Shown piece after piece: positions 31,964 to 47,767 of a stretch of DNA of 64,000 nucleotides. A program made the translations under genes and the position numbers. The stretch's first letter is position 1, and each line of letters starts with the position of its first letter. The DNA is taken from positions 1 to 64,000 of the IMG/VR virus record IMGVR_UViG_3300021511_000003. The stretch is one strand, 5' to 3'. Under the pieces are notes generated by a model. The model had not been told where the DNA came from and made no database searches. It saw only the letters and a list, made by a program, of their open reading frames with translations.

Positions 31964-34900
31964 TCAGTTATGGTCCACTCCTATGACAGTAAGATAGGAA
32001 TTAAGTAATTTAACTGATTCTGGTGTTGTATCTATTGATTGTTTCTCATCTGTTAAAGTTGAATTGATGAAAGTACGGATGTAAGAATTTTTTAAATCAA
32101 TACAGTCAGATTTAGTAGTAAGAAACTCATGTAAATTACATGGTGCATCATGCCCAATTAAACATGCAGTTTCCATCTCACCACATCTTTGACCGCCTTT
32201 ATTTTTTCTACCACCCAATGGTTGAAGTGTTCTCCTTGCATACGCTCCAATACCTCTTGCAGCTAATTTTTCTTCTGCAATATGAACCATTCTAAAAAAG
32301 TAAATAAACCCAACTGCAACAGGATTTACTAAAGATGCTTTTGATAATGGATCATATATTGGAAATTTAAAATCGCTTTCAACGTATTCTATTGCTTTTT
32401 CAACATGTTGTAATTTACATGATTGAAAGGGTGCTTGTATGATTGTAAAATTTTTCAAAAATTCTGCATTGATTTCTTCTGGTAATTGTTCATTAAATTG
32501 GTTATAATACCAATTGTTATCTGTACAATCTATTACCTCAATAAATCCCAGTAAATATTTCTTTATTTCTTCTTGGTTAATCCCATCTTCAGACATTTTT
32601 ATAATATTTTGTTTGAGTTTATCAACAGCCATAGCCATATGTAATTCATACAACTGGCCAATATTCATTCTCGATATAATACCAAGTGGATTAATGCAAA
32701 TATCAAGATGTCTCCCATCTGGCAACTGTGGCATTTTTTCATGATCAACAATTCTGGAAATTACTCCTTTATTTCCATGTCTATTAGCCATTTTATCACC
32801 AACTTGGACTCTCCTGAAATGAACACCAAACATTTCAACATGTATCCCATTGATTCGTTCACGTTTCTTTTTATATTTCCCAACGAACGAAAATTTATCA
32901 AGACTTTTTTCTCTAATAACTTTTAAAGCATCTTCTTTCGACATAACATCCCGTAGAATTTTATGAAGAAATTTTTCTTTATCTTGTTGATCTGCAAGTT
33001 TATTTTCAACCCACTCTTTGTATTCAGGTACTTCTTCATTCCATGTATTTCCGTATATATTAACTTCGGAAATAATATAATTTTTTCGGGCTTCTAATGG
33101 TACAGTTTCAGAAAATACTGAATATTGTTCATCGGAATTTAATTTTTTCAAGATGGCATAAGGATCGCCAGATTTAATTGTTTCAAGTTCTTCAGGTAAT
33201 GGTTTATACTCACCATTTTGTAATGACAAAAGAACCTTATCTGGTGTTATTGTAAATGATAAATCTTTATAATGAACTGATGTTAAAACGTCTTCCTTTA
33301 CAAGTCTATCTGATATAACAATTCCATCCTCATAATTATTACCGTAATAAACCATAACACCAGTTAATAAATTTTTTCCAATATTAATATTACCATTATT
33401 ACAGAAATTACTTTCTGCAATAATATCCCCTGCTTTAAATTTATCTCCGCTTTTTACATATATATTCATAAAGTCCATATGTTCAACATAGATTTTTCTA
33501 TAACGGATATCAAATATATCGGTATCTTTATCATTATAAATAACAATTATATATTCTTTATCAATATGAACGACTTCCCCATCTTTCTTTGCAATTTTAA
33601 CGAATTGCGTATATGATGTGTATAACCCTTCTGACCCTGAACTGATTAGCGGAGTATCAAATTTTCTAAGCATAATTGACTGTCTCATTTGTGATGCAGC
33701 CATTTGTAGTCGAGTTTGATCATTATGCTTTAAAAATGGAGTCATTGATACCGGTATTGATATTGGATGTTTGTCACAAATTTCATCTGTGAATTTCATC
33801 TTTTCATTGATATGTACATTTGGAAGAATGTTTTGTAATACTCCACAGTTGTCTCTATCTGGTGTATCAACAGGACATAATCTACCGAACATACTTGGGC
33901 AAATATCTCTTAAATGCTTGGGAATGTTCTCCCGTTTGAAGCCTCCGGGTCCAAGAAGACTAATTCTCGATAACTTTGTTAATTCTTCAATTGGATTAAT
34001 TGAGAAATCAAATTGAACAATATCTGAAACGTTACACTCTGAAAGTATTTGAGTTGAATTAATATTAAATTTGGGTTGCCTTGCAGTTCGATTTGCAAAA
34101 CATAGATCGAATATGATTTTTGAAATTTTTGCAATGACAATATATTCAAAGCATCTGATTCTTTTATTCGTAAATAGTGTATCATCAACCGAACCAGTTT
34201 TTAATATTTCAGATATTTCTTCAAGGATTGTTGGGTATGTCATAAATTGTGCTGTAATTAAATCAACTTTTGGTATTAAATCAATTGCGTAAAGAATATC
34301 CTCACCTTTTGATTTTGCATTATACCTAGAATAAAGTCTTCCAAGTTCTAATATAAAATCGTCTATTGTGTAACCAATTGATTCATCAATGTATAATTTT
34401 AGATCTTGTCTTAATATATCAAAGAGGTTATCTCTTTCTTGTTCAATATCTATATCTAAATCATATTTTTCTGTGATACCTTCAATTCCATAATATGCAA
34501 GTAATATTAATGATAAAGGAACTTTTTTACCCATGAAGCTAATTTTAATACGTGGTCCTTCTTTGTCTTTAAATGCCATTATGGTTGCTACATTCGTACG
34601 TAGCTTTATATTTTCTCCCCTTGTTACTATGGGTATATCAAAAAGTTGTAATAAGGGAATTTTTCTTCTTCCATTGATATAAATATAATTTTTATCAACC
34701 AATTTTGGAATGAAAATACTTATATCAATTTCAGAAGATCCTTTTTGTAATTTAATAGCCAATGTTTCTTTGAGTGTTTTGGCCAATTCACCAGATGAAA
34801 ATCGTGAATCTTTTAAACTAATATCATTTATTTGAAATCCGATTTCTTCAACCGGTTTTACTATATTTTGTACAATAGGTAAAATATTTTCATAATCCAA

Positions 34901-34966
34901 TTGTCTTAAAGTGAATATATTATTTTCACTATTTTGTATTACAGCATTCGGGTTGATTATTTTCAA
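31964..34966 (-). CDS. rpoB: Multisubunit RNA polymerase beta subunit (TTG start)
   Basis: GRLCPVDTPD, RLQMAASQMRQ, YGNNYEDG, GDKMANRHGNKGVIS, NPLGIISRMNIGQ, GGQRCGEME; GGAGG RBS. Confidence 0.95.
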   Translation of the reverse strand: MKIINPNAVIQNSENNIFTLRQLDYENILPIVQNIVKPVEEIGFQINDISLKDSRFSSGELAKTLKETLAIKLQKGSSEIDISIFIPKLVDKNYIYINGRRKIPLLQLFDIPIVTRGENIKLRTNVATIMAFKDKEGPRIKISFMGKKVPLSLILLAYYGIEGITEKYDLDIDIEQERDNLFDILRQDLKLYIDESIGYTIDDFILELGRLYSRYNAKSKGEDILYAIDLIPKVDLITAQFMTYPTILEEISEILKTGSVDDTLFTNKRIRCFEYIVIAKISKIIFDLCFANRTARQPKFNINSTQILSECNVSDIVQFDFSINPIEELTKLSRISLLGPGGFKRENIPKHLRDICPSMFGRLCPVDTPDRDNCGVLQNILPNVHINEKMKFTDEICDKHPISIPVSMTPFLKHNDQTRLQMAASQMRQSIMLRKFDTPLISSGSEGLYTSYTQFVKIAKKDGEVVHIDKEYIIVIYNDKDTDIFDIRYRKIYVEHMDFMNIYVKSGDKFKAGDIIAESNFCNNGNINIGKNLLTGVMVYYGNNYEDGIVISDRLVKEDVLTSVHYKDLSFTITPDKVLLSLQNGEYKPLPEELETIKSGDPYAILKKLNSDEQYSVFSETVPLEARKNYIISEVNIYGNTWNEEVPEYKEWVENKLADQQDKEKFLHKILRDVMSKEDALKVIREKSLDKFSFVGKYKKKRERINGIHVEMFGVHFRRVQVGDKMANRHGNKGVISRIVDHEKMPQLPDGRHLDICINPLGIISRMNIGQLYELHMAMAVDKLKQNIIKMSEDGINQEEIKKYLLGFIEVIDCTDNNWYYNQFNEQLPEEINAEFLKNFTIIQAPFQSCKLQHVEKAIEYVESDFKFPIYDPLSKASLVNPVAVGFIYFFRMVHIAEEKLAARGIGAYARRTLQPLGGRKNKGGQRCGEMETACLIGHDAPCNLHEFLTTKSDCIDLKNSYIRTFINSTLTDEKQSIDTTPESVKLLNSYLTVIGVDHN

Positions 34967-35153
34967 ACTGAATCCTCCTATCTTTACAGTATACTTTCAA
35001 GTTTTCCTCCAATTTGTCATCGTCAATATAATAAGGATCCCCATGTACTAATAAAACATTCATAATAAGTTGAGTTAAACGAAGATCTGGGTTATTGTAC
35101 CAAACCTTTTTAATTAATACAAGAATTCTATCAATTCTTTTTATGTCTCTCAT
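34929..35153 (-). CDS. Small conserved phage protein (MRDIKRID...PDLRLTQL)
   Basis: Start moved to the ATG at 35153, which overlaps the upstream TGA. Confidence 0.65.
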   Translation of the reverse strand: MRDIKRIDRILVLIKKVWYNNPDLRLTQLIMNVLLVHGDPYYIDDDKLEENLKVYCKDRRIQFENNQPECCNTK

Positions 35154-35636
35154 AAAATGTATCTCCTTAGAACTATAGCTTGATACCATGCTTTATGCCA
35201 CGTTCTATTATAATTTGCTGTTGTATTACAACTATTACAAATAGTTATAAGATTTAATGGGTTACAATCTTTTTTATTATAATTGATATGATGAACAACT
35301 AAATTTGAAGGATTTATTAAATAATTACATACAGGATTTAAACATCTATAACCATCGCGATATTTTATATATTCTTTGTAGATGATTTTTATATGTTCCT
35401 GAAATGAATTTGTAACCATACATGTTTAATGTTTTTTTAATATTATGAATACTTTTCTTTTTTTTTACCTGAGCATTTTAAACATCTTCGACCATTTCTA
35501 AAATTATTTTAAATGAATGATTATTATCACATACCCAGATTAAAGGATCATATCTTGTTTTGTATTCTTTTGATATACAAACATAAGAAAATTGCTTAGC
35601 ATATTCTTTTATGAATTGTATGGTTACTTTTTTCAT
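35150..35636 (-). pseudogene. Frameshifted HNH homing endonuclease remnant between rpoC and rpoB
   Basis: Successive frames give MKKVT...WVCDNNHSF, then NFRNGRRCLKCSGK, then GYKFISGTYKN, then YRDGYRC...VHHINYNKKDC...ICNSC; first stop at 35478-35480. Confidence 0.75.
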
Positions 35637-38348
35637 CTATATAATTTTTTCTCCCTTTAGTATTTTATCCATAACACCAGAATATCTTCCTTCATATAGA
35701 ATTCCTTGTAGAATTGCTCTTTTGGGATTTGAGAACGCCATTGCCAAAATCCAACTTTCTTGGTTGGGTACAGTTTGAATACTATAATACTTTGGAGATA
35801 CTTTTTCACGATTTTCTATCAATCTCCATTTTTTATTATCTCTCCACATTAACTGAGCAACTACAGATTCAAAATGAACATTATGAATATCTTTACCATA
35901 TGCATCAAATAATTCATCAACTATCATGGTATATGTTTTATTTTCGAATTTATGTAATAATTTAGAAACAGATGCAAGATCTCCAATAATATCCTTTTGC
36001 TTCATAGATGTATCATCATCCCCTATTTCTTCACCTTTGATGACTGCTGATCCAGAAGTATGAAATGTACGAAGAACTAATTGAGTTCCTCTCTCACCCA
36101 ATGTTTGAGCTGCTATAATTCCAATAAATCGACTATTAAGAATTTTATATAAATCACCATAACACTTTTTACATATTTTAGGTGATTTACATAATATTGG
36201 GCTTCGTATAAAAATAATTTTTCCGATTATATTTTTATAATTATCTTCTGTGATTTTATATAGGGTTTTATCTTCTTCATTAAGAGCCCATCTGTTAATT
36301 AACATTCGAGCTTTTCTATTATTTTTTACATCAACTTCCAATAAATCTGTTGTACCACAATCGTCAAGATCTTTATCAATCTGTAAATTGGCACATGTAA
36401 AAATAAGTTTTCTTGAAAGATAACCTGATGTTCCTGTATTTAATGCAACGTCCAACAAACCTTTTCTACAACCATATGTTGAATAGAAAAATTCTTTTTG
36501 TGTAAGCCCATCAACTAGAGAATTTTTGATTGGATGGGGTAAAATTTCTCCATCGAAGTTTGAAATAAACCCTCTGGATAAAATTAATTGTTTAACTTGT
36601 CCCCAACTTCCTCTTGCACCTGATTCTATCATATATGAATATTTGAATTTTTCTTTTAACTCATCAATCAAACTTGGATCCGAAAATGCAGTTAATTGAT
36701 TTCTTATACTGCTATGTGAAAAAATATCATGTCTTATTTTCTTTGCTCCTACAATAGGAAAATCTTTTAGTGACATCGTTGTACCATAAAGAGTTGCAAA
36801 TTTAAACCCGGTCTTTTTAATATTATCAAGAATTACAATTGTTTCTTCTTGTGGGTATTTATTTTTAATATCATTCAGGATTCGAAGTAAACCTTTTTCT
36901 GAAATCTTTTTATCGACAACTGGATAATCTTTTGGTAATTGTCTATTAAATTCAGCTCGACCGATTAATAATTTATGTTCTTTATATGTAATTATTTTTT
37001 TTGAAAATTCCTCAGATGTTAAATAATATATTCCCAGAATAATATCTTGACTCGGTGTTGTTGTTAAGTACTCATTAGATGGACTACTTAGATTCGATGT
37101 TATTACAATCTTTTCTTTAATTTCATTTTTGGCGTCATCTGAAATGGGTATATATACAGCCATTTGATCCCCATCAAAATCTGCATTAAATGGAGGACAT
37201 GCGAGCGGATGTATTTTAATAACTGAATCTAATGTAATCTTAATTTTAAAACCTAACATTCCAAGTTTGTGAAGCGAAGGTTGTCTATTTAATATACAGT
37301 ATTCATTTTTTGTTACGTCTTTACAAATTTTTAATAAGACAGGTGTTTTATTTTCAATACATTCGTTTACATAATCAATTGATTTATTGAGTAATTTGAA
37401 TTTACCAAGTTGGATGATTCTTTTTGCTATAGGAAGTTTAAATATTTCAAGTACCATTATATATGGTAACTTACACTCATCCAATGAAAGAGTTGGATCA
37501 GGGGAAATAACTGCACGACCGGAGAAGTCAATTCTTTTTCCAAGAATATTCCCTCGTATCAACCCCTCTTTTTTAGCCATCTTTTCAAGAATTCTTGTAT
37601 AAAGTTCGCTAACGTCTTTTTGTAATTGTTTAAAATATGTATAATAGAGAGCCTTATCACGTTGAATATCAATAATTGTGTCTCTCATAATTTCTTTTTT
37701 AGTTAGTATTTGAACATAATAACGATTGATTTTATCCATTAACTGTTTTGTTTCGCCTGAACTTTTTGATGTTGGTCGTAACTCAGGTGGTAATACAATA
37801 ATCTGATTTATCAATAAATTACTTAGATTATCTTTAATAATTTGCCATTCTGGTGGGTTATCTGGGTTTTCAGCAACAGCTCTGACCAACTCTTCAATTG
37901 CTTCCACTCGTTCCCACTTTTCTGCACCTACTGGTATTTGATCTTCACTTATTGTAACTACATATTCATCTAAAGCTGAGTCTAAATAAAGAATACTTTT
38001 ATCATTTTTCATAAGATCATCGATTGCTTTTTTTAAGCCTTTACCGCCCAAATTAACAATTAGATCATAAAATAATGGATTAACCACAGATATCGGTATT
38101 ACAATTTTTGCGAATGTTTTTCTTCTGGAATCACTATTTATAATAGGAACACCACAAATATCACACACACTACCGGATTTCGATACACCATGATAAATGC
38201 CACATTGGCATGTATAATTTCTCACTGGCCCAAATATTTGTTCAGAGAATAAGCCTTCTGGGTTAAACTTTTTCTTTCCGAATGTTTTTAGAGACGTTAC
38301 TTCGTCTAAGTTTTCACAGAAATCACTATAATTTAAAATCTTAGGCAT
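35637..38348 (-). CDS. rpoC: Multisubunit RNA polymerase beta-prime subunit
   Basis: GLFSEQIFGP...CQCG...CDICG, ILGKRIDFSGRAVI, NRQPSLH, FNADFDGDQM, SGARGS, TSGYLSRKL, QTLGERGTQLVLRTFH. Confidence 0.97.
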   Translation of the reverse strand: MPKILNYSDFCENLDEVTSLKTFGKKKFNPEGLFSEQIFGPVRNYTCQCGIYHGVSKSGSVCDICGVPIINSDSRRKTFAKIVIPISVVNPLFYDLIVNLGGKGLKKAIDDLMKNDKSILYLDSALDEYVVTISEDQIPVGAEKWERVEAIEELVRAVAENPDNPPEWQIIKDNLSNLLINQIIVLPPELRPTSKSSGETKQLMDKINRYYVQILTKKEIMRDTIIDIQRDKALYYTYFKQLQKDVSELYTRILEKMAKKEGLIRGNILGKRIDFSGRAVISPDPTLSLDECKLPYIMVLEIFKLPIAKRIIQLGKFKLLNKSIDYVNECIENKTPVLLKICKDVTKNEYCILNRQPSLHKLGMLGFKIKITLDSVIKIHPLACPPFNADFDGDQMAVYIPISDDAKNEIKEKIVITSNLSSPSNEYLTTTPSQDIILGIYYLTSEEFSKKIITYKEHKLLIGRAEFNRQLPKDYPVVDKKISEKGLLRILNDIKNKYPQEETIVILDNIKKTGFKFATLYGTTMSLKDFPIVGAKKIRHDIFSHSSIRNQLTAFSDPSLIDELKEKFKYSYMIESGARGSWGQVKQLILSRGFISNFDGEILPHPIKNSLVDGLTQKEFFYSTYGCRKGLLDVALNTGTSGYLSRKLIFTCANLQIDKDLDDCGTTDLLEVDVKNNRKARMLINRWALNEEDKTLYKITEDNYKNIIGKIIFIRSPILCKSPKICKKCYGDLYKILNSRFIGIIAAQTLGERGTQLVLRTFHTSGSAVIKGEEIGDDDTSMKQKDIIGDLASVSKLLHKFENKTYTMIVDELFDAYGKDIHNVHFESVVAQLMWRDNKKWRLIENREKVSPKYYSIQTVPNQESWILAMAFSNPKRAILQGILYEGRYSGVMDKILKGEKII

Positions 38349-38350
38349 AT

Positions 38351-38575
38351 TTATTCTCCTATATTTATATTTTCAATTATGAATTGCCCTATTGCAAGAA
38401 AATGACTTTTTATTTTTTGAGCAATTATTCGATCTAAATCAGGCATAATTTCATGAGCTATAATTTTTATATCATCTACTGACAATTCAATCTTTGAATC
38501 TTTTATAGCTTTGTCAACTATGCGGGTGATTTCCTTTTCTAATAGTGATGGTTGTTCGATATTAATCTTTTTCAT
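38351..38575 (-). CDS. Small hypothetical protein abutting the rpoC start
   Basis: ORF track; overlapped by the upstream gene. Confidence 0.6.
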   Translation of the reverse strand: MKKINIEQPSLLEKEITRIVDKAIKDSKIELSVDDIKIIAHEIMPDLDRIIAQKIKSHFLAIGQFIIENINIGE

Positions 38576-38780
38576 TTTTTTTAGATTCCTTTTTATCGAT
38601 CTTGATTTTTATCTTATCAACTCCTTTGTCAACTATTTCATCTGCTGTATCAGCAGTACGTTCAACCATCAGTTTAATTAATGATCTTATTGATTTTTTA
38701 CCTGTTGTTGCAATATCATCAATAATAATTTTAATCTGTTTTTTCACTTCTTTATTAGTTAATTTTTTTTTATTTTCCAT
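38562..38780 (-). CDS. Small basic hypothetical protein
   Basis: ORF track; GGAG RBS inside the upstream gene. Confidence 0.55.
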   Translation of the reverse strand: MENKKKLTNKEVKKQIKIIIDDIATTGKKSIRSLIKLMVERTADTADEIVDKGVDKIKIKIDKKESKKNEKD

Positions 38781-39127
38781 GCTCCTAACACCTCTTGTTT
38801 TTTATATTGTATTTCATCCCAAGGTGTAAAGTAACAGTCATCTAAATTAAAGCATAATAACATATTAGTAATCATATTTTTAGACTTGTTCGTTAAATTA
38901 TATTTTCGTAAACTATGTGGTATACAAAACTCTCCACTTTTTGGTATTGCATTTGGGTGTGGATTATCTAATATAACCATATCAATTTTACCATTAACAG
39001 TTTTAACAATAAAACCATCAACTTCAAATTTATTTGCTAGTTTCGTAATTGTATATATTTCATTTTTATATATTAATTTCCTTGGTTTGATAAATTCGGT
39101 TATTTCATGATTTTTTATTATCATCAT
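38759..39127 (-). CDS. Small putative E2/UBC-like protein
   Basis: HPNAIPKSGEFCIP resembles the E2 signature HPN-x(7)-C with one extra residue; coupled to the upstream ThiF gene by ATGA overlap. Confidence 0.5.
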   Translation of the reverse strand: MMIIKNHEITEFIKPRKLIYKNEIYTITKLANKFEVDGFIVKTVNGKIDMVILDNPHPNAIPKSGEFCIPHSLRKYNLTNKSKNMITNMLLCFNLDDCYFTPWDEIQYKKQEVLGAWKIKKN

Positions 39128-39984
39128 GCAGCTCCGGTTTCAGGAATTAACTCGACATAAACATTACTGTTTTCATTGTATAGTGATATTACAAAATTAT
39201 TAAAATCTGTCTGACAAGATACTAAAGACATAAATAATGTAATTAAATCTTTACCATTTTTCAAAGAGTTCATTGGAATCACTTTTTCAGAAACAGGAAA
39301 CATTCTACTTCCAAGAAATACAGTAACATCTTTATCTTTGTTTATATCCATTATTGGGACAATTTTATCTGGCAAATTTAAAAATTTTTCATTCCCCAGA
39401 ATGTTTTCATATACTATATCATAATTTTTATTATCAATATGCTTGACATAATCGAGTTCATATTTTTGAATAGATTTACTTTTTATAAGAGTTGTAATTA
39501 TATCACAATGAATCAACATAGAAATAATTGAAGCAGCATACCTCAAATCATTTCTTGATAATTCTAAAATATATTTTCCAGCCTGTAAGCAAGAGTATGT
39601 AACATTTTTTCTAAAGTCACCCATTAAATATCTTGATGATATGTAAAATCTTGCATCAATCTCTTTTTGTCGATCATAGGTATAATCTCTACAATCAATT
39701 ACTAAATCCTCTTTTATAAGTTTTGTTTTACCTTCCTTATATTTACTTTGAAATGCACATATTTCAAGATCAGGATTTTGATCATGTAGAATATCTTTTA
39801 GAGCTTCGACTTTTGGGGCACCTATATCGACTTGTCGGTAAATCGAATTCTTCAAATTCTTTTTCTCAACTATATCGTGGTCTAATATAACTATCTTCTC
39901 AATTCCTTCCAAATTAGCTATAGCTTCTGCTACAAATCCACCGAGTGTTCCTAACCCAATTATTACTATATTTTTATACACCAC
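39124..39984 (-). CDS. Divergent ThiF/E1-like protein with C-terminal extension
   Basis: IIGLGTLGG, DHDIVEKKNL, GAPKVEAL, IDCRD; lacks the canonical NxxRQ arginine; ends VELIPETGAA. Confidence 0.8.
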   Translation of the reverse strand: MVYKNIVIIGLGTLGGFVAEAIANLEGIEKIVILDHDIVEKKNLKNSIYRQVDIGAPKVEALKDILHDQNPDLEICAFQSKYKEGKTKLIKEDLVIDCRDYTYDRQKEIDARFYISSRYLMGDFRKNVTYSCLQAGKYILELSRNDLRYAASIISMLIHCDIITTLIKSKSIQKYELDYVKHIDNKNYDIVYENILGNEKFLNLPDKIVPIMDINKDKDVTVFLGSRMFPVSEKVIPMNSLKNGKDLITLFMSLVSCQTDFNNFVISLYNENSNVYVELIPETGAA

Positions 39985-40013
39985 GGGTCATAGTCTCCTT
40001 TACTGATATTGTG

Positions 40014-40032
40014 GGGGGATACAATATCCCCC
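40014..40032 (-). terminator. GC hairpin GGGGGATA-CAA-TATCCCCC (plus-strand sequence)
   Basis: 8-bp stem between 40052-40618 and the second ThiF gene; U tract weak. Confidence 0.5.
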
Positions 40033-40051: not shown

Positions 40052-40618
40052 TTATAGTTGAGCTTCCTCCATCGGTTCAGTGAAAATATCTAGTTCTTTA
40101 AGCATTTGTTGTTCTTCAGTACCAACCGGAACTGGTCGATAATGTGATTTATACTTAAAGAAATTATTTGCCAATTTAATGGGATAGCTTAAGGGGATAT
40201 TATATGAATATTTCTTTATTTTACCACTTTTCAAAATATTAACTGGTAATGTCGGATCTATTCGTGATAATTCTCCAGCAATTTCACTCCTGAAATGAAG
40301 GTCACCTTTTGCATCTTTTACTTTAAAAGATCGGTTAATAACTTTATCATCTCGGGATGAACCGTTGATTTTCATTTTATTTTCTTTTCTGATCAATGCT
40401 TTCATAGCGCGACCAAATGCTATATTTTTTCCTTTTACTTTTGAAAATGTATCGCGTAGAGAGCATATTGCAACTCCTCTTGATTCAATACGTTTTAACT
40501 TTGAATTGATAAAAACACAAGCTGTGAAAACATTATTCGCAATAGCACTTCCTGCAACATAAAATGCTACTTTATCAACTCTATTGTTGTTCAATATCTT
40601 TTGTGTTTCAGGATTCAT
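40052..40618 (-). CDS. Conserved phage hypothetical protein
   Basis: GVAICSLRDTFSKVKGKNIAFGRA, a CSxxDxF-x-KxxG-xx-IA pattern I recognise from other phage proteins. Confidence 0.7.
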   Translation of the reverse strand: MNPETQKILNNNRVDKVAFYVAGSAIANNVFTACVFINSKLKRIESRGVAICSLRDTFSKVKGKNIAFGRAMKALIRKENKMKINGSSRDDKVINRSFKVKDAKGDLHFRSEIAGELSRIDPTLPVNILKSGKIKKYSYNIPLSYPIKLANNFFKYKSHYRPVPVGTEEQQMLKELDIFTEPMEEAQL

Positions 40619-40642: not shown

Positions 40643-40660
40643 GGGGGCCCGAAGACCCCC
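40643..40660 (-). other. Stable RNA hairpin GGGGGUC-UUCG-GGCCCCC downstream of the Ubl gene
   Basis: C(UUCG)G tetraloop on the mRNA strand; no U tract follows. Confidence 0.7.
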
Positions 40661-40674
40661 ATTTCTAATGATAT

Positions 40675-41145
40675 TTAACCTTTCTTCCCTGCTGGTTTCA
40701 GGAATTCCAGATTGTCGCCGGAGTTTAGAACATACTCCGCATCGACTTCTTTGCCATTAACCAGTCCTGTAGAAAGACGATCAACATTCAGAACTTCACG
40801 AAGGAAGTCACCAACTTCTTTTACGCTCTTACCGGCAACTGGGAAATTACCAGAAGATGCTCCACAAGATACATGAATGGTTGTGGTGGCACGGGAACCG
40901 AAAGGGGCATCGGGTTTAGTAATTGTACTTTGACCGGTAAACTGAATACCGGTAAGTTTTTCCATTGCCTTTTCGGGAGCTTTGCTAATTGTTGAACCAC
41001 CGCCATAACGAGCGAGAATTGCATTGATAACGGTATTTTTATTTTTTTTGGAAACCCCCGGGATATTCAATTCATCAATACACATTCTTTTAAGGGCTTT
41101 GGATGTTTTGGCTTCAAGTTCTTCTCTTTTGAAAATTCTTCCCAT
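40675..41145 (-). CDS. Ubiquitin-like (beta-grasp) modifier with N-terminal HeH/Rho-N-like domain
   Basis: C-terminal ~70 aa IHVSCG...VAGKSVKEV...LVNGKEV...VLNSGDNLEFLKPAGKKG-COOH; N-terminal LEAKTSKALKRMC...IPGVSKKNKNTVINAIL. Confidence 0.8.
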   Translation of the reverse strand: MGRIFKREELEAKTSKALKRMCIDELNIPGVSKKNKNTVINAILARYGGGSTISKAPEKAMEKLTGIQFTGQSTITKPDAPFGSRATTTIHVSCGASSGNFPVAGKSVKEVGDFLREVLNVDRLSTGLVNGKEVDAEYVLNSGDNLEFLKPAGKKG

Positions 41146-41161
41146 TGTAAAATCTCCTTTG

Positions 41162-41848
41162 TTAATGTTTCACGATTCGAATTTTTGCATCTGCAGTCAT
41201 TTTTGTTAAATCAAAATAAACTTCAGATCGTTCATACTCGTCTTTGACTACAACGTTGTAGAAAGACCAACACATCAAAGTTGCAACCCCCAGATTTGCA
41301 AAGTATAGTTGGGGGTCAGAATGAGCAAGCTCATCACAACTCATTTCTTCTGGTAATTTATCATCTGGCTCTGCTATTTCTGGATGATATGCACATAGAT
41401 CAGGAGTTAAGTCTTTTCCATCTCTTCTAATATAAATCTGCACATTACCATCTGTATAGTCATTGCCACCAGAAATTAAAATAACATTTTGTAAATTTTT
41501 ACAGTAATTGGATACAATCATTCTGGTTTTGTGATTATCAACACATAGAAATACAATATAGTCTTCTTTAATAACTTCTTCTACAGTTTTTTCATTTACA
41601 AAAGCTTCGAATGCATTAAACTCTAGTCCATCAAATTTCATTTCAAGTTCGGTAGCTTTTATATCAGCTTTATTTCCGATACGAAAAAACTCTTGTCGTT
41701 CATAATTTTTTTGTTCATACTCGTCTCCATCCACCAATAGTAATTCTGCATCAAGATCTTTTGAATAGTTTAAAAATCTACATAATCTCTCAACTAATAT
41801 AGAACCAACTCCACCAAGTCCAATAACTGATATAAACATGTCAGACAT
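41162..41848 (-). CDS. ThiF/E1 family activating enzyme
   Basis: VIGLGGVG, DGDEYEQKNYERQ, LCVDNHKTR, SGGND...GNVQ, MSC (candidate catalytic Cys), QLYFAN. Confidence 0.92.
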   Translation of the reverse strand: MSDMFISVIGLGGVGSILVERLCRFLNYSKDLDAELLLVDGDEYEQKNYERQEFFRIGNKADIKATELEMKFDGLEFNAFEAFVNEKTVEEVIKEDYIVFLCVDNHKTRMIVSNYCKNLQNVILISGGNDYTDGNVQIYIRRDGKDLTPDLCAYHPEIAEPDDKLPEEMSCDELAHSDPQLYFANLGVATLMCWSFYNVVVKDEYERSEVYFDLTKMTADAKIRIVKH

Positions 41849-43386
41849 TATAAAACCTCTCTTTTAAATACTTTTTTAAACATAGCCATGAGACCATTTG
41901 GTTGTTCTGATATTGGTATTATGGTTGATCCTGGTTCCGGTATTCTTTGAATAGGTTCATCCTCCTTTTTAGCAGCTTGAGTTATCTCATCTACTTCTCG
42001 TGTTAAAAGCACTCCTTTATTTGTATATGGTTGTTCAGGTTTTTCTATACTATTAATTGGAGTGTAACAGAAAGGACAAGTTTCATCACTATTGTTTAAG
42101 TGAAAGCCATTACCACATTCTTTACATTTAATATATGAAGATTCTTCAATTTCTTTTGTAGAATCTTTTTTAAACATGTGGTCATATTCATCGCCTGGTA
42201 TATATTGATCTGACAGAACTTCCTCTTTATCTAATAGAATAAGATGTTCATTTGTATTACATGTGGAACATTGGAGTTCGAATCCTTCTTCCTCTTTAAC
42301 AATCTCGCCACAATTTTTACAAAAATACATCTCTTCAAAATCATCTTCCTCAATCTCAGAAGTAAGTTTGCAAAGTCTATGAGTGCATGTGGCACATGGT
42401 ACAAAGTCACCATCCTGAGTATGTGGAGGGAACTTTAAAGGTGTTGGTATCACTGGTTTAATACCTGGCTTGGAAGCACGTGAATTAATATTTTTTCCAT
42501 TTTGCTTCCAAATAGAACGATCATAATTAAAACCCCAACCATCATTATATGCATGAGCAGCATATCCATACCATCCAGCGTATCCATTACGATAACTTGG
42601 GAAGGTGTAAACACCCTTTTCTACCATACTCATCCAGTTTTTATTGAAAATACGATCCTCATCTGAGCATACTATATCATATCTACGATCAAATTTTTTA
42701 CGCTCGAATGGATATTTGGGCTTGACATCTACATCTTCAATAAGTTTTCCATTTTTCCATTTATAAACTGTTTTAACTGATTTATTATCAATGGAATTAG
42801 TTTCAGACATACACACTATATTATCAATATATTTTTCAGGTTCTATCATTTGTCGAAACCCGTTTGATACAATTGATGAAGAAAGGCTGGGATATTTATC
42901 ACCTAAATCTCCAAATGTCAGATGAAGTCCATCAAAATGTTCTTCATCACTATCATCAACTCCTGAATGAAACGCTGACATGTTTCCATGACTATGAATA
43001 GTTCCAATCATTGTATATCCATCAATAGTCAAACCTTTATCATAATCACAGCTAGCACCTGCGACTTTTTGATGTGGCGGAACAATTTTATGTTCTCCCG
43101 TTTGTTCATTATAGAACAATAGAACGATTGCTTCTGATCTGTTATATGTATCATATACTTCTCGAAAAAAGCTTATAACTTTTGCAATATATTTTCCAGG
43201 AATCTTTGTAATATGCATTCGTGCACTTGATGCCACACTTTCAAGAATTGAGATATTTTTAACCGGTGCAATACTTTCCATTACACCAAGTTTCTTTTTA
43301 AGAAATACTCCCTCCTTACCAATAATATAATAAATATCATCTTTAGGCATTTCATTTTGCCCATCATTCAGGACTACTTTAAACAT
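41848..43386 (-). CDS. JAB/MPN metalloprotease with C-terminal zinc ribbons
   Basis: SEAIVLL, GTIHSHGNMSAFHSGVDDSDE; CATC, CKNC...CSTC, CKEC...CPFC. Confidence 0.9.
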   Translation of the reverse strand: MFKVVLNDGQNEMPKDDIYYIIGKEGVFLKKKLGVMESIAPVKNISILESVASSARMHITKIPGKYIAKVISFFREVYDTYNRSEAIVLLFYNEQTGEHKIVPPHQKVAGASCDYDKGLTIDGYTMIGTIHSHGNMSAFHSGVDDSDEEHFDGLHLTFGDLGDKYPSLSSSIVSNGFRQMIEPEKYIDNIVCMSETNSIDNKSVKTVYKWKNGKLIEDVDVKPKYPFERKKFDRRYDIVCSDEDRIFNKNWMSMVEKGVYTFPSYRNGYAGWYGYAAHAYNDGWGFNYDRSIWKQNGKNINSRASKPGIKPVIPTPLKFPPHTQDGDFVPCATCTHRLCKLTSEIEEDDFEEMYFCKNCGEIVKEEEGFELQCSTCNTNEHLILLDKEEVLSDQYIPGDEYDHMFKKDSTKEIEESSYIKCKECGNGFHLNNSDETCPFCYTPINSIEKPEQPYTNKGVLLTREVDEITQAAKKEDEPIQRIPEPGSTIIPISEQPNGLMAMFKKVFKREVL

Positions 43387-45958
43387 TAATCATACTCCTT
43401 TCATCATTTATGAATTCAAATATTGAAGAATTACAGGTATAAGTATGTCCGTGGCAATTTGTCCAACCTCTTTTAGTACCAATTTCATTCTGTATTCTTT
43501 GTGAAATTCTTGGATTTAATATATAATCGAATTTGTAGTTTACAGCAGTATATTTATCCAGTAAAGTATACCTTGGAATTCGTGTATAATATTTCAAGTC
43601 TAATATATTTAACTTATGATTACCGTTTATCTTAAACACAATGCAACCGGCATCGGTTTGATATTCATTCTCACCAACAATAATATCACCAGGTTGAAAT
43701 TTAATTTTTGCAATATCAATGGGGGCATGTGAAATAGTTGCCCATTTTTTATTCGTCATTGAAATTTTCTTGAACTTATTGATTACATCACTGTACCATA
43801 AAGTACAACAATTTGAACATAGTACTAATGGATCAGACCCACCTGTATCTGTTATAAAACCAATGATAATATGTGTATCTTTTTTAAGGAAATGTAAAAT
43901 ACCAGTCTCTTGAGCTTGAATTTTCATCCCTGCTGTAAGGTTGCCATATACATTTGTAATATGCCTGATTTTTCCTGTAAATATTGATCCGGTTGGTCCA
44001 TCAACATACTTTATTTGGTGTAGTATACCTTCCTTATCAGCTAATATAAAATGTATATCTCCTCTCTCTTCATTAAATTTAAATCCTTGAATTATTTTTA
44101 TCGAAAGCATATTTATTGGATTTTCCCAATCAGAAGTAACAACTTTGTCTCCTATAGCAAAGTCAATGTTCATATCATAACTTTCAACTCTGAATTTATC
44201 ATCGTTCAAAATATATTTTTTTATTTCCAATGGTGATGGAATTGCGGCAGATTGATATCTATTATCAATTGCGACACCATTTGGAGTACCAAATGTTGTA
44301 CCTTCCATGGGATCATGTGTATTTCGTCTCGACATTATTAATGTACGACCGACTCTAACAAGTGGCGGTAATGGTTTGATAGTTTCTGTATCAAATATCA
44401 ATGAATTGTGTATTGTTGAATCTATGTTTATTCTAAAATAGTCATTATTTAAGTTATCATCTATACTTCGAAATTGTAGTTTTAATCTATCTGTATGATC
44501 AACATTAAAATCATCATATTTTACCAAATAACCACTGAGTAGGGGGGTTTCATTTGTTGCACCATTTATAAATAAATAAGTTTTATCCTTTGTTAGTTTA
44601 AGACCATTATATACTGGGTTTGATAAATTATAAACTTTCGCTTCTAAATGTTCAAGAATATAGAAACCATCACCAAAACATGCTTCGTGATATCCTTCTT
44701 GATTAAGACGAATATAACCAACCTTCTTATATACAGTATTACCGATACCATTTTTCATTTGAACAATGTCATCCTTTTTAACAATATCACCATTTTTCAA
44801 CGTACCTTCTTTTTCGTATCGAAGTTCTATAGTTTTTTCTTTCAGAAATTTTGAAAATGCTTTTGTGTTTTTATAAATAATCAAACGACCATCTTCTCTT
44901 TCAACTCTGAAATATTTGATACCTCCACTATTTTCAAAACTAATAAGCGAATTGATATAACACATACGTTTATTATTTTTAATAAGGAATGGATCTCCTA
45001 CATGAATATAAAATTTGTTATCCAGAAATACACCCTCTGCAACATCATAGTATAACTTATATTTCTTTTTGGCTCGCTTTGTTGGTTTGGCAACTTTACC
45101 TGTATCCATTTTTGTTGAAAACATTTGAGTGAGGGATTTATATTCAACTTGTTTTGTGGTTTTATTATTATGTCGTTTTATTTCATCAATGGCTTGACCA
45201 AAATTCATTGGAATTTTAATCCAGTCAACATTATAAATAAACATAGGATTTAATTTAGATAAACCCTGCCATTCCATATATGTACTAACACCAGCAACTT
45301 TTTCATATGCATGATAGTTATACATGTAGTCATTATTAAACTCAGCACCCCAGAATACATTAATTGCTTTTTCAACTGCTGCATTCAATGACTCAGATAT
45401 TCCACTTGATTTAGTACCAAAACAAATATACTGACTTTCTGAAATATTTGGTAATGGTATTTTAAGAAGATAATCTGATAATCCTGTTAATCTTGCAACT
45501 CTCAAAAATGCCTGACCACATCGTATATCATAAAAATCATCGATATATAAAATAAAGATAACATATGGGAATGCCAAATTAAATGACGGTACTTCATCAA
45601 TGTTGGTTGTAAAATTTTCACTATAATCATATTTTTCAAGTCTACCACTACGTTTTAGTATATTAGTTTCACGTTGAAAATTTAAATCGATTTTAATTGT
45701 TCTAAACGCTGGTGGTTCTTCAATAGCAATGATATACCCACCTTGTACTCTTTCCATAAATCTACAATTTGGTGGTAAAACATTCATTGATTGATCGTTT
45801 ATAGTAAGTGCAATACGTTTAAGATAATCTATAGTAAGAAGGGATTTCTTATGAATAACTGGTAATGAATCATTATTTAATATTGAATCCTTGTATTCAG
45901 ATCTATATAAATTCGTATACTTTGAGTTTATTCTTATTTCATTTTTTAAATTCATCAT
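43379..45958 (-). CDS. Prokaryotic E2-like conjugating enzyme (PRTRC-B/Prok-E2 type) with ~600-aa C-terminal extension
   Basis: LAFPYVIF...LLKIPLPNISESQYICFG...VFWGAEFNND within the first ~230 aa; adjacent to JAB, E1 and Ubl genes. Confidence 0.75.
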   Translation of the reverse strand: MMNLKNEIRINSKYTNLYRSEYKDSILNNDSLPVIHKKSLLTIDYLKRIALTINDQSMNVLPPNCRFMERVQGGYIIAIEEPPAFRTIKIDLNFQRETNILKRSGRLEKYDYSENFTTNIDEVPSFNLAFPYVIFILYIDDFYDIRCGQAFLRVARLTGLSDYLLKIPLPNISESQYICFGTKSSGISESLNAAVEKAINVFWGAEFNNDYMYNYHAYEKVAGVSTYMEWQGLSKLNPMFIYNVDWIKIPMNFGQAIDEIKRHNNKTTKQVEYKSLTQMFSTKMDTGKVAKPTKRAKKKYKLYYDVAEGVFLDNKFYIHVGDPFLIKNNKRMCYINSLISFENSGGIKYFRVEREDGRLIIYKNTKAFSKFLKEKTIELRYEKEGTLKNGDIVKKDDIVQMKNGIGNTVYKKVGYIRLNQEGYHEACFGDGFYILEHLEAKVYNLSNPVYNGLKLTKDKTYLFINGATNETPLLSGYLVKYDDFNVDHTDRLKLQFRSIDDNLNNDYFRINIDSTIHNSLIFDTETIKPLPPLVRVGRTLIMSRRNTHDPMEGTTFGTPNGVAIDNRYQSAAIPSPLEIKKYILNDDKFRVESYDMNIDFAIGDKVVTSDWENPINMLSIKIIQGFKFNEERGDIHFILADKEGILHQIKYVDGPTGSIFTGKIRHITNVYGNLTAGMKIQAQETGILHFLKKDTHIIIGFITDTGGSDPLVLCSNCCTLWYSDVINKFKKISMTNKKWATISHAPIDIAKIKFQPGDIIVGENEYQTDAGCIVFKINGNHKLNILDLKYYTRIPRYTLLDKYTAVNYKFDYILNPRISQRIQNEIGTKRGWTNCHGHTYTCNSSIFEFINDERSMINV

Positions 45959-46366: not shown

Positions 46367-46717
46367 TTACTTGTAAGGTGTTCTTGGCGGTTTGGATTTT
46401 TTTGTGTAGTATCTCATTGTTTTAGTATCCATCCATTCAACTCCATCAAACGGAACAGAACGCCACGCTTTTTTATCTAGATCATAAACATGCATTATTT
46501 TATTTTTTTGAATCAAACTAAGTATATTTTGAATATTAACACCTTTTGGGTGATCCTTCTTTGGAATTTTTGTAAAATCCAATGTACATCTCATAATACG
46601 ATTAGTTTTATCTTTTTTTTCAAACTTGATAACAACTTCTTTTTCATCATAAACTTTTTTCCAAAATGTGATCGCACTCATAATTACATTGCTATCTAAA
46701 GGTTTTTGATCTACCAT
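46367..46717 (-). CDS. WYL_2/DUF2693-like SH3-fold protein
   Basis: VIKFEKKDKTNRIMRCTL...VYDLDKKAWRSV. Confidence 0.7.
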   Translation of the reverse strand: MVDQKPLDSNVIMSAITFWKKVYDEKEVVIKFEKKDKTNRIMRCTLDFTKIPKKDHPKGVNIQNILSLIQKNKIMHVYDLDKKAWRSVPFDGVEWMDTKTMRYYTKKSKPPRTPYK

Positions 46718-46720
46718 AAT

Positions 46721-47767
46721 TTATTCTCCCCGTTTATCAGAGTGTACTAACGTATTTACTCCTTCTTCTGTTTCATCAAGATATTGACTCATCATCAAGC
46801 ATGAATGATTACAGGATTTACAATAATATTGCTTGTCTGACACTATTGCATTGAATACATACGCAGATATAAGATGTGGATCTGTTTTATCAAACAACTG
46901 TGTTACATTCAATTCTGGACTCGAAACACCCTTGATTCTCAAACATAATCTAATTGTTCCATCTGCATCAATTGAAATATTATGCAAACCTTGTTCCAAT
47001 TTGCAATCATAATTTGTTGGTAATGTATTAAACATTTTTGGGATTAAAATGTCTTTCATATGAACATATAAAGATAGATTGTTTACAATATTAACCAACT
47101 CCTCTGCTAATCTGAATGTTGGTTGAACTAATGTTTTTATATCCCAAACATTTGAAAAGTCGTAAAATGGACTTTTTGCAATATCAACAAATGTAATATC
47201 GCTATATATGTTATTCATACTCAACTGTTCTACGAGTTTATACAATAGATGTTGATTATGATTCATAACTGTTATTTCAGCCACAACATCCTTAACTTTA
47301 CCTGCTTCCTGAATCTCCTTCAATCTTTTGAGACCTTCAATGCTTTTCATTACTCGATCTTCATCTGCACCGATTTCATTAAAGATTGGATCCACTGAAC
47401 TCGTAAAACCTTCTATATGATCAACCTTATCAAATAACTTTTTGATTAATGGTTGAATTGTTGGGGTGTTGTTCGTAATAATGGTATAGTAGATTTCATT
47501 GTCATTACAATAATTTATAATATCAGGTAGATCAGGTCTTAATAATGGTTCACCACCATAAAATATATGAAACACATCTGGATTGTGAACCTTAAATGCT
47601 GCAAGGGTTTTAATAACAACTTCTGTTGGCATTTCATTTTTGATATAATGTTTCATATCAGGATATAGATATGGTTTTCCATTATAGTTTCTCACAATAG
47701 CACAATATTCACATTCAAGATTACATTTTCTTGTGAGAAGCCAATTTACAATTCTTACTTGACTCAT
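46721..47767 (-). CDS. Radical SAM enzyme with SPASM/twitch-like C-terminus
   Basis: CNLECEYC, YGGEPLLR, C...ISIDADGTIRLC, CKSCNHSC. Confidence 0.92.
   Translation of the reverse strand: MSQVRIVNWLLTRKCNLECEYCAIVRNYNGKPYLYPDMKHYIKNEMPTEVVIKTLAAFKVHNPDVFHIFYGGEPLLRPDLPDIINYCNDNEIYYTIITNNTPTIQPLIKKLFDKVDHIEGFTSSVDPIFNEIGADEDRVMKSIEGLKRLKEIQEAGKVKDVVAEITVMNHNQHLLYKLVEQLSMNNIYSDITFVDIAKSPFYDFSNVWDIKTLVQPTFRLAEELVNIVNNLSLYVHMKDILIPKMFNTLPTNYDCKLEQGLHNISIDADGTIRLCLRIKGVSSPELNVTQLFDKTDPHLISAYVFNAIVSDKQYYCKSCNHSCLMMSQYLDETEEGVNTLVHSDKRGE

Follow-up and report, generated by a model that had tools for sequence, protein, structure and literature searches.

A phage-encoded E1-like/E2-like pair in front of RNA polymerase genes as a candidate self-sufficient acyl-transfer module

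Introduction

What do an E1-like and an E2-like protein do at the head of the RNA polymerase operon of a phage, and which molecule would they conjugate? The question is raised by a stretch of 64,000 nucleotides, hereafter "the window", that corresponds to positions 1–64,000 of the 223-kb linear IMG/VR virus record IMGVR_UViG_3300021511_000003 (~30% G+C, 71% complete by CheckV). All the features considered below lie on its minus strand, and the two in question are ThiF2 (39124–39984), an E1-like adenylating enzyme of 286 residues matching Pfam ThiF, and E2L (38759–39127), a truncated protein of 121 or 122 residues resembling the ubiquitin-conjugating (UBC) family, whose genes are followed by two small open reading frames (ORFs) and by the genes of β′- and β-like RNA polymerase subunits. 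An earlier sequence-only reading of this DNA had recognized here a second, divergent E1-like/E2-like pair and proposed that ThiF2 either bears a fused ubiquitin-fold domain or is a precursor trimmed by a JAB peptidase, that the pair might use a ubiquitin-like protein (Ubl) encoded nearby and that RNA polymerase is its partner or substrate. Each feature so described was recovered at the position indicated, and the interpretation stands in part, as detailed in the following sections.

Up to now, work on ubiquitin-like conjugation in bacteria (type II CBASS, Bil, Bub) has dealt with it as a means of defence against phages, and the classical HPN-Cys signature has been lost by most prokaryotic E2 families. 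In the present case, a large uncultured clade of jumbo phages endowed with its own multisubunit RNA polymerase carries two E1/E2-like systems. The view put forward here, tentatively and as a possibility that falls somewhat short of being probable, is that ThiF2 and E2L may constitute a self-sufficient E1–E2 acyl-transfer module, placed first in the RNA polymerase operon and separate from the neighbouring system.

The E2-like protein

The model of E2L is a confident one (predicted local distance difference test, pLDDT, 92.3), in which a five-strand meander leads to the HPN loop and Cys68, after which come two helices, the first being the shorter, and a small hairpin containing the sequence CYFTPW. 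The near-canonical E2 signature previously noticed, HPNAIPKSGEFC, is indeed present as residues 57–68 (nucleotides 38924–38959) and represents an HPN(x8)C active-site loop whose H57, P58, N59 and C68 are invariant in 49 out of 49 aligned homologues, down to 23% identity, the His and the Cys being invariant also in 31 more distant members of the family. A pattern HPN-(5–10 residues)-C is found in 92 of 100 distinct E2L sequences, and the other eight have longer inserts or HxN/HPH variants, with the Cys kept in the corresponding loop. A second cysteine, C98, was considered as a further catalytic or metal-binding residue and rejected, being lost in three lineages (L038, L039 and L043).

The assignment of E2L to the UBC fold, expected for 38759–39127, is borne out by the model and by the structure searches. 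The nine best matches returned by Foldseek against the PDB are all E2s, yet weak (E 0.2–2); a search of 48,161 representative PDB chains carried out by means other than Foldseek gave E2s in the first 13 places and members of the UBC superfamily, including BubB, the E2 domain of Cap2, RWD and UEV, in 25 of the first 28. Matches in the ESM Atlas are two viral clusters followed by UQ_con clusters (template modelling, TM, score 0.51–0.55), and those among the AlphaFold DB clusters are two uncharacterised proteins followed by E2s; of the 100 nearest named ESM Atlas clusters in a language-model comparison, 86 are Prok-E2_D, E2-CBASS or UQ_con. The profile of the E2L family has a single match in the PDB, a Pex4-type E2, aligned exactly at PHPNxNxKTGExC, so that the E2L loop faces the Pex4 motif PHPNVNFKTGEIC with the same HPN…C spacing. 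One of the 31 distant members matches Pfam UQ_con (E 0.0033); the protein of the window stays below every Pfam threshold, and no Pfam, PHROG or PADLOC family was found for it. Residues 1–108 of the model superpose only on E2 residues ~28–30 to ~135–140, the N-terminal helix 1 and the C-terminal helices 3–4 being missing, with root-mean-square deviations (rmsd) within the range published for BubB versus UBE2D2 (PMC11601596). As judged from its predicted structure, E2L is a truncated UBC-fold protein that, while missing these helices in common with other non-canonical bacterial E2s, keeps the classical active site.

The best matches in the AlphaFold DB are located at the C-termini of longer uncharacterised proteins, at residues 248–364 of the 365 of A0A497H311 (TM by query 0.58) and at residues 361–468 of the 470 of A0A1G2CY93 (TM by query 0.42); in these an E2L-like domain could be fused to a different one, possibly an E1.

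The number of homologues, 107 for ThiF2 and 317 for E2L, the latter family amounting to 313 clusters at 50% identity, indicates that both are real genes and not chance ORFs. The two families are known only from metagenomes; among deposited phage genomes, megablast and tblastn found no relative with the ThiF2–E2L pair.

The adenylation domain of ThiF2

Residues 5–116 of ThiF2 match Pfam ThiF (E 2.9e-19) and the best sequence-level matches of its adenylation domain are MoeB/ThiF proteins (7e-9). The domain (residues 1 to ~195; 39400–39984) has a Rossmann-like adenylation fold with a GxGxxG loop, and alignment to solved E1 structures places the end of the E1 fold near residue 190. In a profile alignment with E. 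coli ThiF and MoeB, the G-loop, DxD, Lys58, DCRD and Arg105 are in place; D35, D37, K58, D97 and R105, each either invariant or conserved to at least 95%, align with their ThiF/MoeB counterparts. In 38 ThiF2 sequences, down to 34% identity, K58, D97, C98, R99, R105, R112, D123, Y130, G136 and Y138 are invariant.

Two departures from the canonical E1 pattern emerge from the same alignments. The Arg of the NLxRQ motif, whose loss had been pointed out, is missing, Asn46 occupying its position, and an Arg-Gln pair (Arg50), at least 90% conserved in the near clade, is found four residues further on. Furthermore, a conserved catalytic Cys in or near the crossover loop was not found, Y130, G136 and Y138 being invariant instead, and the sole Cys conserved in the 38 sequences is C98 of DCRD. 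Since the nucleotide and Mg ligands are intact but a conserved crossover Cys is lacking, ThiF2 looks like an active adenylating enzyme that would be unable to form the usual E1 thioester.

The C-terminal domain of ThiF2 and its tail

Beyond the region that can be aligned to any solved E1, ThiF2 possesses an add-on domain (residues 204–286; 39127–39375) that AlphaFold2 predicts with pLDDT values of 85–93 as helix, strand, strand, helix, strand, strand and tail. The strand-strand-helix-strand-strand pattern formerly discerned in the last ~75 residues is reproduced by this model, with strands at 220–225 and 230–236, a helix at 244–255 and strands at 264–271 and 274–281, followed by a tail of lower confidence. 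The domain has the β(2)-α-β(2) element order and the flexible tail that a β-grasp would require, so that, as far as the model goes, a fused Ubl is plausible. The suggestion of a fused ubiquitin-fold domain is upheld with respect to the presence of an extra C-terminal domain and to the order of its elements, but sequence or profile similarity to Ubls does not accompany it; indeed, hhalign gave a probability <1% for the comparison with the operon's own Ubl. Structure searches made with the whole ThiF2 model returned matches dominated by the E1 domain. PqqD/MftB leads from an Atlas feature search (0.66–0.74) were discarded, being below the trust level and having the wrong element order.

The tail itself, ETGAA-COOH (39127–39141), is the most conserved short element of the protein outside the active site. 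Of 102 distinct homologues, 100 terminate with Ala and 100 have a Gly at position −3, the residue between the two being Ala, Gly, Ser or Val in all 102; the preceding Thr and Glu/Asp are each present in >90%; the consensus, [ED]-T-G-[AGS]-A-COOH, ends with neither a terminal Gly nor a Gly-Gly. The GAA end is kept in the distant ThiF2 of L046, L050 and L052, and is replaced by GGA in L056 and by ISA in L054. The last codons contain a GGAG that can serve the next gene as a ribosome-binding site, and conservation of the tail as a by-product of this element was rejected as the sole cause; in fact, every codon of the tail varies synonymously among homologues, so that selection must bear on the peptide itself and not just on the ribosome-binding site contained in its codons.

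The number of residues that follow the Gly is constant in the ThiF2 family, unlike the variable extension of the neighbouring Ubl (see below), and for this reason we take the tail to be used as it stands, untrimmed. Cleavage by JAB between the Gly and the two alanines, as had been envisaged, is unlikely, the two residues after the Gly being fixed in number and invariably small in the 102 sequences; the case for trimming is further weakened by the occurrence of the GAA tail in a lineage without a nearby JAB gene.

One system or two

The genes of the block are transcribed from the minus strand in the order p859, JAB, ThiF1, Ubl, hairpin, p188, hairpin, ThiF2, E2L, s72, s74, β′, β. ThiF1 and ThiF2 are the only ThiF genes in the parent genome of the window, and E2L is present in one copy. 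The module that precedes the pair (40675–45958) comprises p859 (43379–45958), whose N-terminus is E2-like, a JAB protein of 512 residues with zinc ribbons (41848–43386), ThiF1 (41162–41848), a canonical E1 with Cys171, and the Ubl (40675–41145), 156 residues long with a KG end.

The block from p859 to rpoB is syntenic in 40 IMG/VR loci reached through ThiF2 and in four reached through E2L, down to 34% ThiF2 identity. An IMG/VR search anchored on rpoC, in which loci were counted for the pair when more than 2.2 kb of upstream sequence was available and for the module when this exceeded 6.5 kb, showed this type of rpoC to be immediately preceded by ThiF2 and E2L in 67 of 67 loci, with ThiF1, Ubl, JAB and p859 also present in 58 of 58. 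The proximity of the pair to rpoC, which the sequence-only reading could observe in a single genome, holds throughout these related phages, and the finding is in this respect more general than that reading could know.

A separation of the two modules is observed in L046 and L047, which come from two independent samples and have the order SbcD, SbcC, radical SAM, WYL_2, a 121-residue gene, ThiF2, E2L, an s74 homologue, rpoC and rpoB; between ThiF2 and a 126-residue gene that follows WYL_2, the window's genome has p859, JAB, ThiF1 and Ubl. Neither Ubl nor JAB nor ThiF1 was found within the 7 kb upstream of ThiF2 in L046 and L047, p859 also being absent from that position, and the ThiF2 tail of these loci is still GAA.

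The junction between the two modules is marked in the window by a GC-rich hairpin located 3′ of the Ubl gene (40643–40660). Together with a second GC-rich hairpin situated between p188 and ThiF2 (40013–40032), it is the only G5…C5 hairpin of the 64 kb (chance expectation 0.01), the two flanking the variable gene p188 (40052–40618), which is present in some related loci and absent from others, the Ubl gene lying immediately upstream of ThiF2 wherever p188 is absent. Of 35 loci, 31 have a strong hairpin in the 60 nucleotides that follow the Ubl stop codon, with medians of −22 kcal/mol and of −5.4 for z; its sequence differs between loci and its structure is conserved. Placed ahead of the run from ThiF2 to rpoB, it may serve as a terminator or as a processing site, or else mark the boundary of a cassette.

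The upstream module is predicted to be complete by itself because ThiF1 has every canonical E1 residue (NYERQ, the Lys, DNH..R) as well as an invariant Cys171. ThiF1 and JAB match the NCBIfam families PRTRC_ThiF (5.8e-11) and PRTRC_A (8.6e-10), respectively, ThiF2 reaching only 2.3e-4 with the former; JAB keeps the HSH…S..D motif. The N-terminus of p859 is an E2-like domain that lacks the His and has PN(x7)C as its invariant motif (N171, C179), weakly matching Pfam Prok-E2_D (E 0.012) and, by hhalign, the HPN…C loop of E2L (E 0.021). In the Ubl, a ThiS/MoaD-like C-terminal domain is preceded by an N-terminal helix-hairpin resembling Rho_N (Pfam E 0.0028). The Ubl family ends with KPAG[KRN]KG, and in about one quarter of the sequences a single C, R or F follows this last Gly, an indication that the Ubl may be matured by the adjacent JAB.

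The evolutionary rates of these proteins were compared over 48 non-redundant loci after regressing out the mean rpoC/rpoB distance, the resulting partial r being evaluated with 999 permutations. E2L covaries with the E1 domain of ThiF2 (r 0.58) and with its tail domain (r 0.52), values reached in both cases by none of the permutations, and ThiF1, JAB, Ubl and p859 covary with each other (r 0.19–0.39, reached by 0–11 of 999). On the other hand, all pairings tested between E2L or ThiF2 and ThiF1, Ubl, JAB or p859 yielded non-significant values between −0.08 and 0.01. With rpoC and rpoB the pair covaries no more strongly than the other module does, residual phylogenetic signal being dominant. The pair diverges 1.6–1.8 times faster than the polymerase (mean p-distance 0.59–0.68 versus 0.37) with its catalytic motifs fixed.

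Rate covariation, the L046/L047 lineage, the boundary hairpin and the completeness of the upstream module indicate that ThiF2/E2L and p859/JAB/ThiF1/Ubl are two separate systems. The premise of a second, divergent E1-like/E2-like pair is supported. The use of the Ubl at 40675–41145 by ThiF2 and E2L is instead disfavoured, since their rates do not covary with it. A ThiF1–ThiF2 heterodimer with an inactive ThiF2, of the SAE1/APPBP1 kind, was likewise rejected in view of the invariant catalytic ligands of ThiF2, of its r of 0.01 with ThiF1 and of its presence in loci without a nearby ThiF1.

Mechanism and alternative explanations

In the mechanism that can be proposed, ThiF2, presumably dimeric, would adenylate a C-terminal carboxylate, and the acyl group would pass to Cys68 of E2L either directly or through the crossover-loop tyrosine Y130 or Y138, as in the Bub E1s, with the asparagine of HPN supporting aminolysis onto a target lysine. 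A dedicated Ubl is missing from the pair, which does not covary with the neighbouring Ubl either, and the ThiF2 tail is highly conserved; for these reasons the likeliest acyl donor would be the C-terminal Ala of ThiF2 itself, activated in trans across the dimer. The scheme carried to its end, with ThiF2 acting as its own modifier so that, after activation by the dimer partner and transfer through Cys68, the whole 33-kDa enzyme would become attached to a lysine of the polymerase or of the host, is a doubtful one, more apt to be wrong than right. Individual elements of it have precedents: in type II CBASS a cGAS with a terminal Gly or Ala and without β-grasp fold is conjugated, a terminal Ala being accepted by Cap2 (PMC10097602), and Bub comprises a Cys-less E1 that relies on a Tyr of the crossover loop, together with a truncated E2 whose rmsd to UBE2D2 is comparable (PMC11601596). 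Alternatively, the add-on domain and the tail may recruit the E2, like the ubiquitin-fold domain (UFD) of canonical E1s or the C-terminal peptide of UBA5.

A different organization, in which ThiF2 and E2L would be the working E1 and E2 of the Ubl, the tail domain a UFD that recruits E2L, and p859, JAB and ThiF1 the source of maturation, deconjugation or a second route, would account for the contiguity of Ubl and ThiF2 in the loci devoid of p188 and for the coexistence of all six genes in the 58 loci with sufficient flank; the Ubl also has a proper C-terminal Gly, sometimes followed by one residue that JAB could remove, and the classical HPN…C belongs to E2L, the E2-like domain of p859 lacking the His. 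However, the partial r values of E2L, of the ThiF2 E1 domain and of the tail domain with the Ubl range from −0.06 to 0.00, those of E2L and of the E1 domain with ThiF1 are −0.07 and 0.01, and the other module does covary internally; the conserved hairpin stands between Ubl and ThiF2, the ThiF2–E2L–rpoC arrangement exists in L046/L047, where Ubl, JAB and ThiF1 are missing from the 7 kb upstream, and the module already complete upstream matches the operon type consisting of Ubl, JAB, E1 and His-less E2 (Iyer et al. 2006). A single combined system of this kind is, on balance, unlikely. We rate as quite improbable the idea that ThiF2, like MccB, PaaA or TcdA, adenylates the carboxylate of a peptide or of a non-protein compound, with E2L as a carrier or accessory and no protein tagging at all: a UBC core whose HPN-Cys loop is invariant is characteristic of transfer through a thioester with subsequent aminolysis, ThiF2 starts at the first Rossmann strand and is devoid of the N-terminal peptide-clamp domain of MccB/PaaA, and its strictly conserved C-terminus would be left to explain.

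If, on the contrary, E1/E2 ancestry were a relic and ThiF2 and E2L were non-catalytic structural or assembly subunits of the phage polymerase, for instance a dimeric platform replacing α, their invariant position before β′ and β with translational coupling in every locus would find an immediate explanation, and it would also agree with the fact that no α-like gene was noticed in the operon. Nevertheless, the nucleotide and Mg ligands of ThiF2 and the HPN and Cys of E2L are invariant in spite of a divergence faster than that of the polymerase, and it is this invariance in rapidly diverging proteins that speaks for enzymes rather than scaffolds; covariation with rpoC and rpoB is, moreover, not in excess of that displayed by the other module. 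This explanation is very improbable.

Several observations weigh against ThiF2/E2L being a self-sufficient conjugating module. The Arg replaced by Asn46 is the canonical ATP-contacting residue, and no single compensating Arg is kept across the wider ThiF2 family, distant members having K, N or none. For the tail domain, comparisons with the operon Ubl, Pfam and PDB sequences gave no sequence or profile similarity to ThiS, MoaD, ubiquitin or that Ubl. Tandem duplications of E2L exist among distant relatives (P0242, at L050:3546–4259, P0304, P0286 and P0355) in which one copy is without Cys, and the homologue P0297 has Asp in place of the Cys in addition to an unrelated C-terminal domain of ~190 residues. 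As to the separation of the two systems, L046 and L047 are fragments, and the other module could lie elsewhere in those genomes; covariation of adjacent genes can reflect a shared recombination history, and the p188 indel likely marks the junction as a recombination point. The link of the pair to RNA polymerase, finally, is a hypothesis drawn from gene order and tight packing only.

As regards the target of the putative module, the position at the head of the operon argues for co-expression only, and a host-facing or conflict-related target fits at least as well as the phage polymerase because the pair evolves faster than the polymerase with its catalytic motifs fixed.

Gene junctions and surroundings of the pair

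ThiF2 starts with GTG, preceded by AAGGAG 10 nucleotides upstream, and its stop codon overlaps the E2L ORF through the ATGA that had been reported. In most relatives this junction is TAATG or TGATG, with a 1-nucleotide overlap, and the E2L homologues start one codon later; for this reason E2L probably begins, like its homologues, with the second ATG (39124), which would give a protein of 121 residues and a 1-nucleotide overlap. Judging from this arrangement, the ThiF2 and E2L genes are translationally coupled.

The two small overlapping ORFs described between E2L and rpoC are also present. The first, s72 (38562–38780), is charged and helical, overlaps E2L by 22 nucleotides, is weakly conserved and is undetected in many relatives; the second, s74 (38351–38575), overlaps s72 by 14 nucleotides, ends 2 nucleotides before the ATG of rpoC and is conserved at the same position in most relatives, the distant L046 and L056 included. 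The C-terminal KQEVxGxW of E2L (38759–38800) overlies the AGAGGTG ribosome-binding site and the ATG of s72, and its conservation is attributed to the nucleotide level because these elements of the next ORF sit there; many E2L homologues terminate right after KQEV, and the confidence of the AlphaFold2 model is low at this end. A programmed frameshift on an A-run at the E2L/s72 junction was rejected, the A-run not being conserved.

The β′-like subunit (903 residues; 35637–38348) matches Pfam Rpb1 domains 2, 3 and 5 above the cut-offs (E 1.6e-34 for domain 2), with domains 1 and 4 below them, and the β-like subunit (1000 residues; 31964–34966) has orthologues in L002 and L004 that match Pfam Rpb2 domains. 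Three small ORFs lie between rpoC and rpoB (34929–35636), where related phages have one ORF of ~60 residues; that at 35150–35419 weakly resembles HNH_3, with an E value (1.3e-4) that does not reach the Pfam cut-off, and the region looks like a homing-endonuclease insertion specific to the window's genome.

Further observations concern the surroundings of the block. The remainder of p859, ~600 residues, has a conserved SNCC motif near residue 715. Several divergent loci, not including the window, have between Ubl or p188 and ThiF2 an ORF of ~80–87 residues (L033:6591–6830, L042:9701–9961, L029:9749–9988) with the pattern FSYDGG..KLQ..R......DG..GY...GRL...E..F; it has no Pfam match, and a resemblance to PC4/YdbC found no support in Pfam. 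Genes for radical SAM and WYL_2 proteins lie upstream of the block, and relatives have in addition GTP cyclohydrolase I and PTPS (QueD-like) genes near the polymerase genes (46367–47767 in the window, L002:16900–17808 and L046:331–732), which hints at a pathway for nucleotide modification of the 7-deazaguanine type in this phage clade. Homologous loci P0017 and P0104 (L004) are deposited in metagenome-assembled genomes labelled Candidatus Pacearchaeota and Heimdallarchaeaceae; since the full phage block including rpoC and rpoB is present, these are probably phage contigs binned with archaea. An Asgard-virus preprint describes three ThiF/E1-like genes in Nidhogg virus.

Significance and comparison with known systems

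Were the conjugation of ThiF2 to other proteins to prove true, the notion that any protein with the right tail can act as a modifier would widen from cGAS to the activating enzyme itself, and a phage would be found to encode a two-gene, Ubl-free conjugation system that keeps the eukaryote-like HPN-Cys chemistry. If its target were the polymerase or a host factor, this would represent a new mode of phage control over transcription or of counter-defence. A compact system of two proteins belonging to a large family would also lend itself to the study of minimal E1–E2 chemistry.

With type II CBASS (Cap2/Cap3, cGAS) ThiF2 shares only the similarity of the E1 fold and the terminal Ala. Cap2 is an E2–E1 fusion having the E1 catalytic Cys, whereas here the genes are separate, E1 first and E2 next, and ThiF2 is without that Cys; CBASS includes a CD-NTase and an effector, neither of which was found in the phage block, and conjugates cGAS, whereas the donor proposed here is the E1 itself. 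Furthermore, the pair is phage-encoded and adjoins RNA polymerase genes, and the nearby JAB, unlike Cap3, belongs to another module.

The invariant crossover tyrosines of ThiF2 recall the Tyr of the Bub E1. However, the Bub E2 has Ser instead of Cys and no HPN, whereas the Cys of E2L is invariant; the Bub E1, to which a JAB peptidase is fused, has a separate multi-domain Ubl as its substrate, whereas ThiF2 has no JAB domain; and Bub is a bacterial operon presumed to serve defence, whereas the pair consists of phage genes. No Pfam match to the DUF6527 of Bub was found. Classical E2s (UQ_con: Pex4, UbcH5, UBE2K) have in common with E2L the HPN…C spacing, the β-meander and the crossover helix, but E2L has only 121 residues, ends with a family-specific CYFTPW hairpin and has no helix 1, 3 or 4.

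MoeB and ThiF are, like ThiF2, minimal E1s without thioester relay, but ThiF2 is devoid of their N-terminal Arg-finger helix and Zn-binding CxxC motifs and is paired with an HPN-Cys E2. Its extra domain lies at the C-terminus and ends with GAA, not GG; similarity to MoaD and ThiS could not be detected. A fusion of an E1 with a ubiquitin-like domain has a precedent in C. jejuni ThiF, in which this domain is N-terminal (Iyer et al. 2006), and a cluster with a ThiF plus ThiS-like fusion exists in the ESM Atlas.

The known system that the neighbouring module (ThiF1, JAB, p859, Ubl) resembles is PRTRC/operon type 6d (Iyer et al. 2006), from which the pair differs insofar as E2L keeps the classical His and covariation places ThiF2 and E2L outside that system. 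The ThiF2–E2L pair, an HPN-Cys E2 associated with a cysteine-less E1 having a strictly conserved C-terminus, is a previously undescribed combination.

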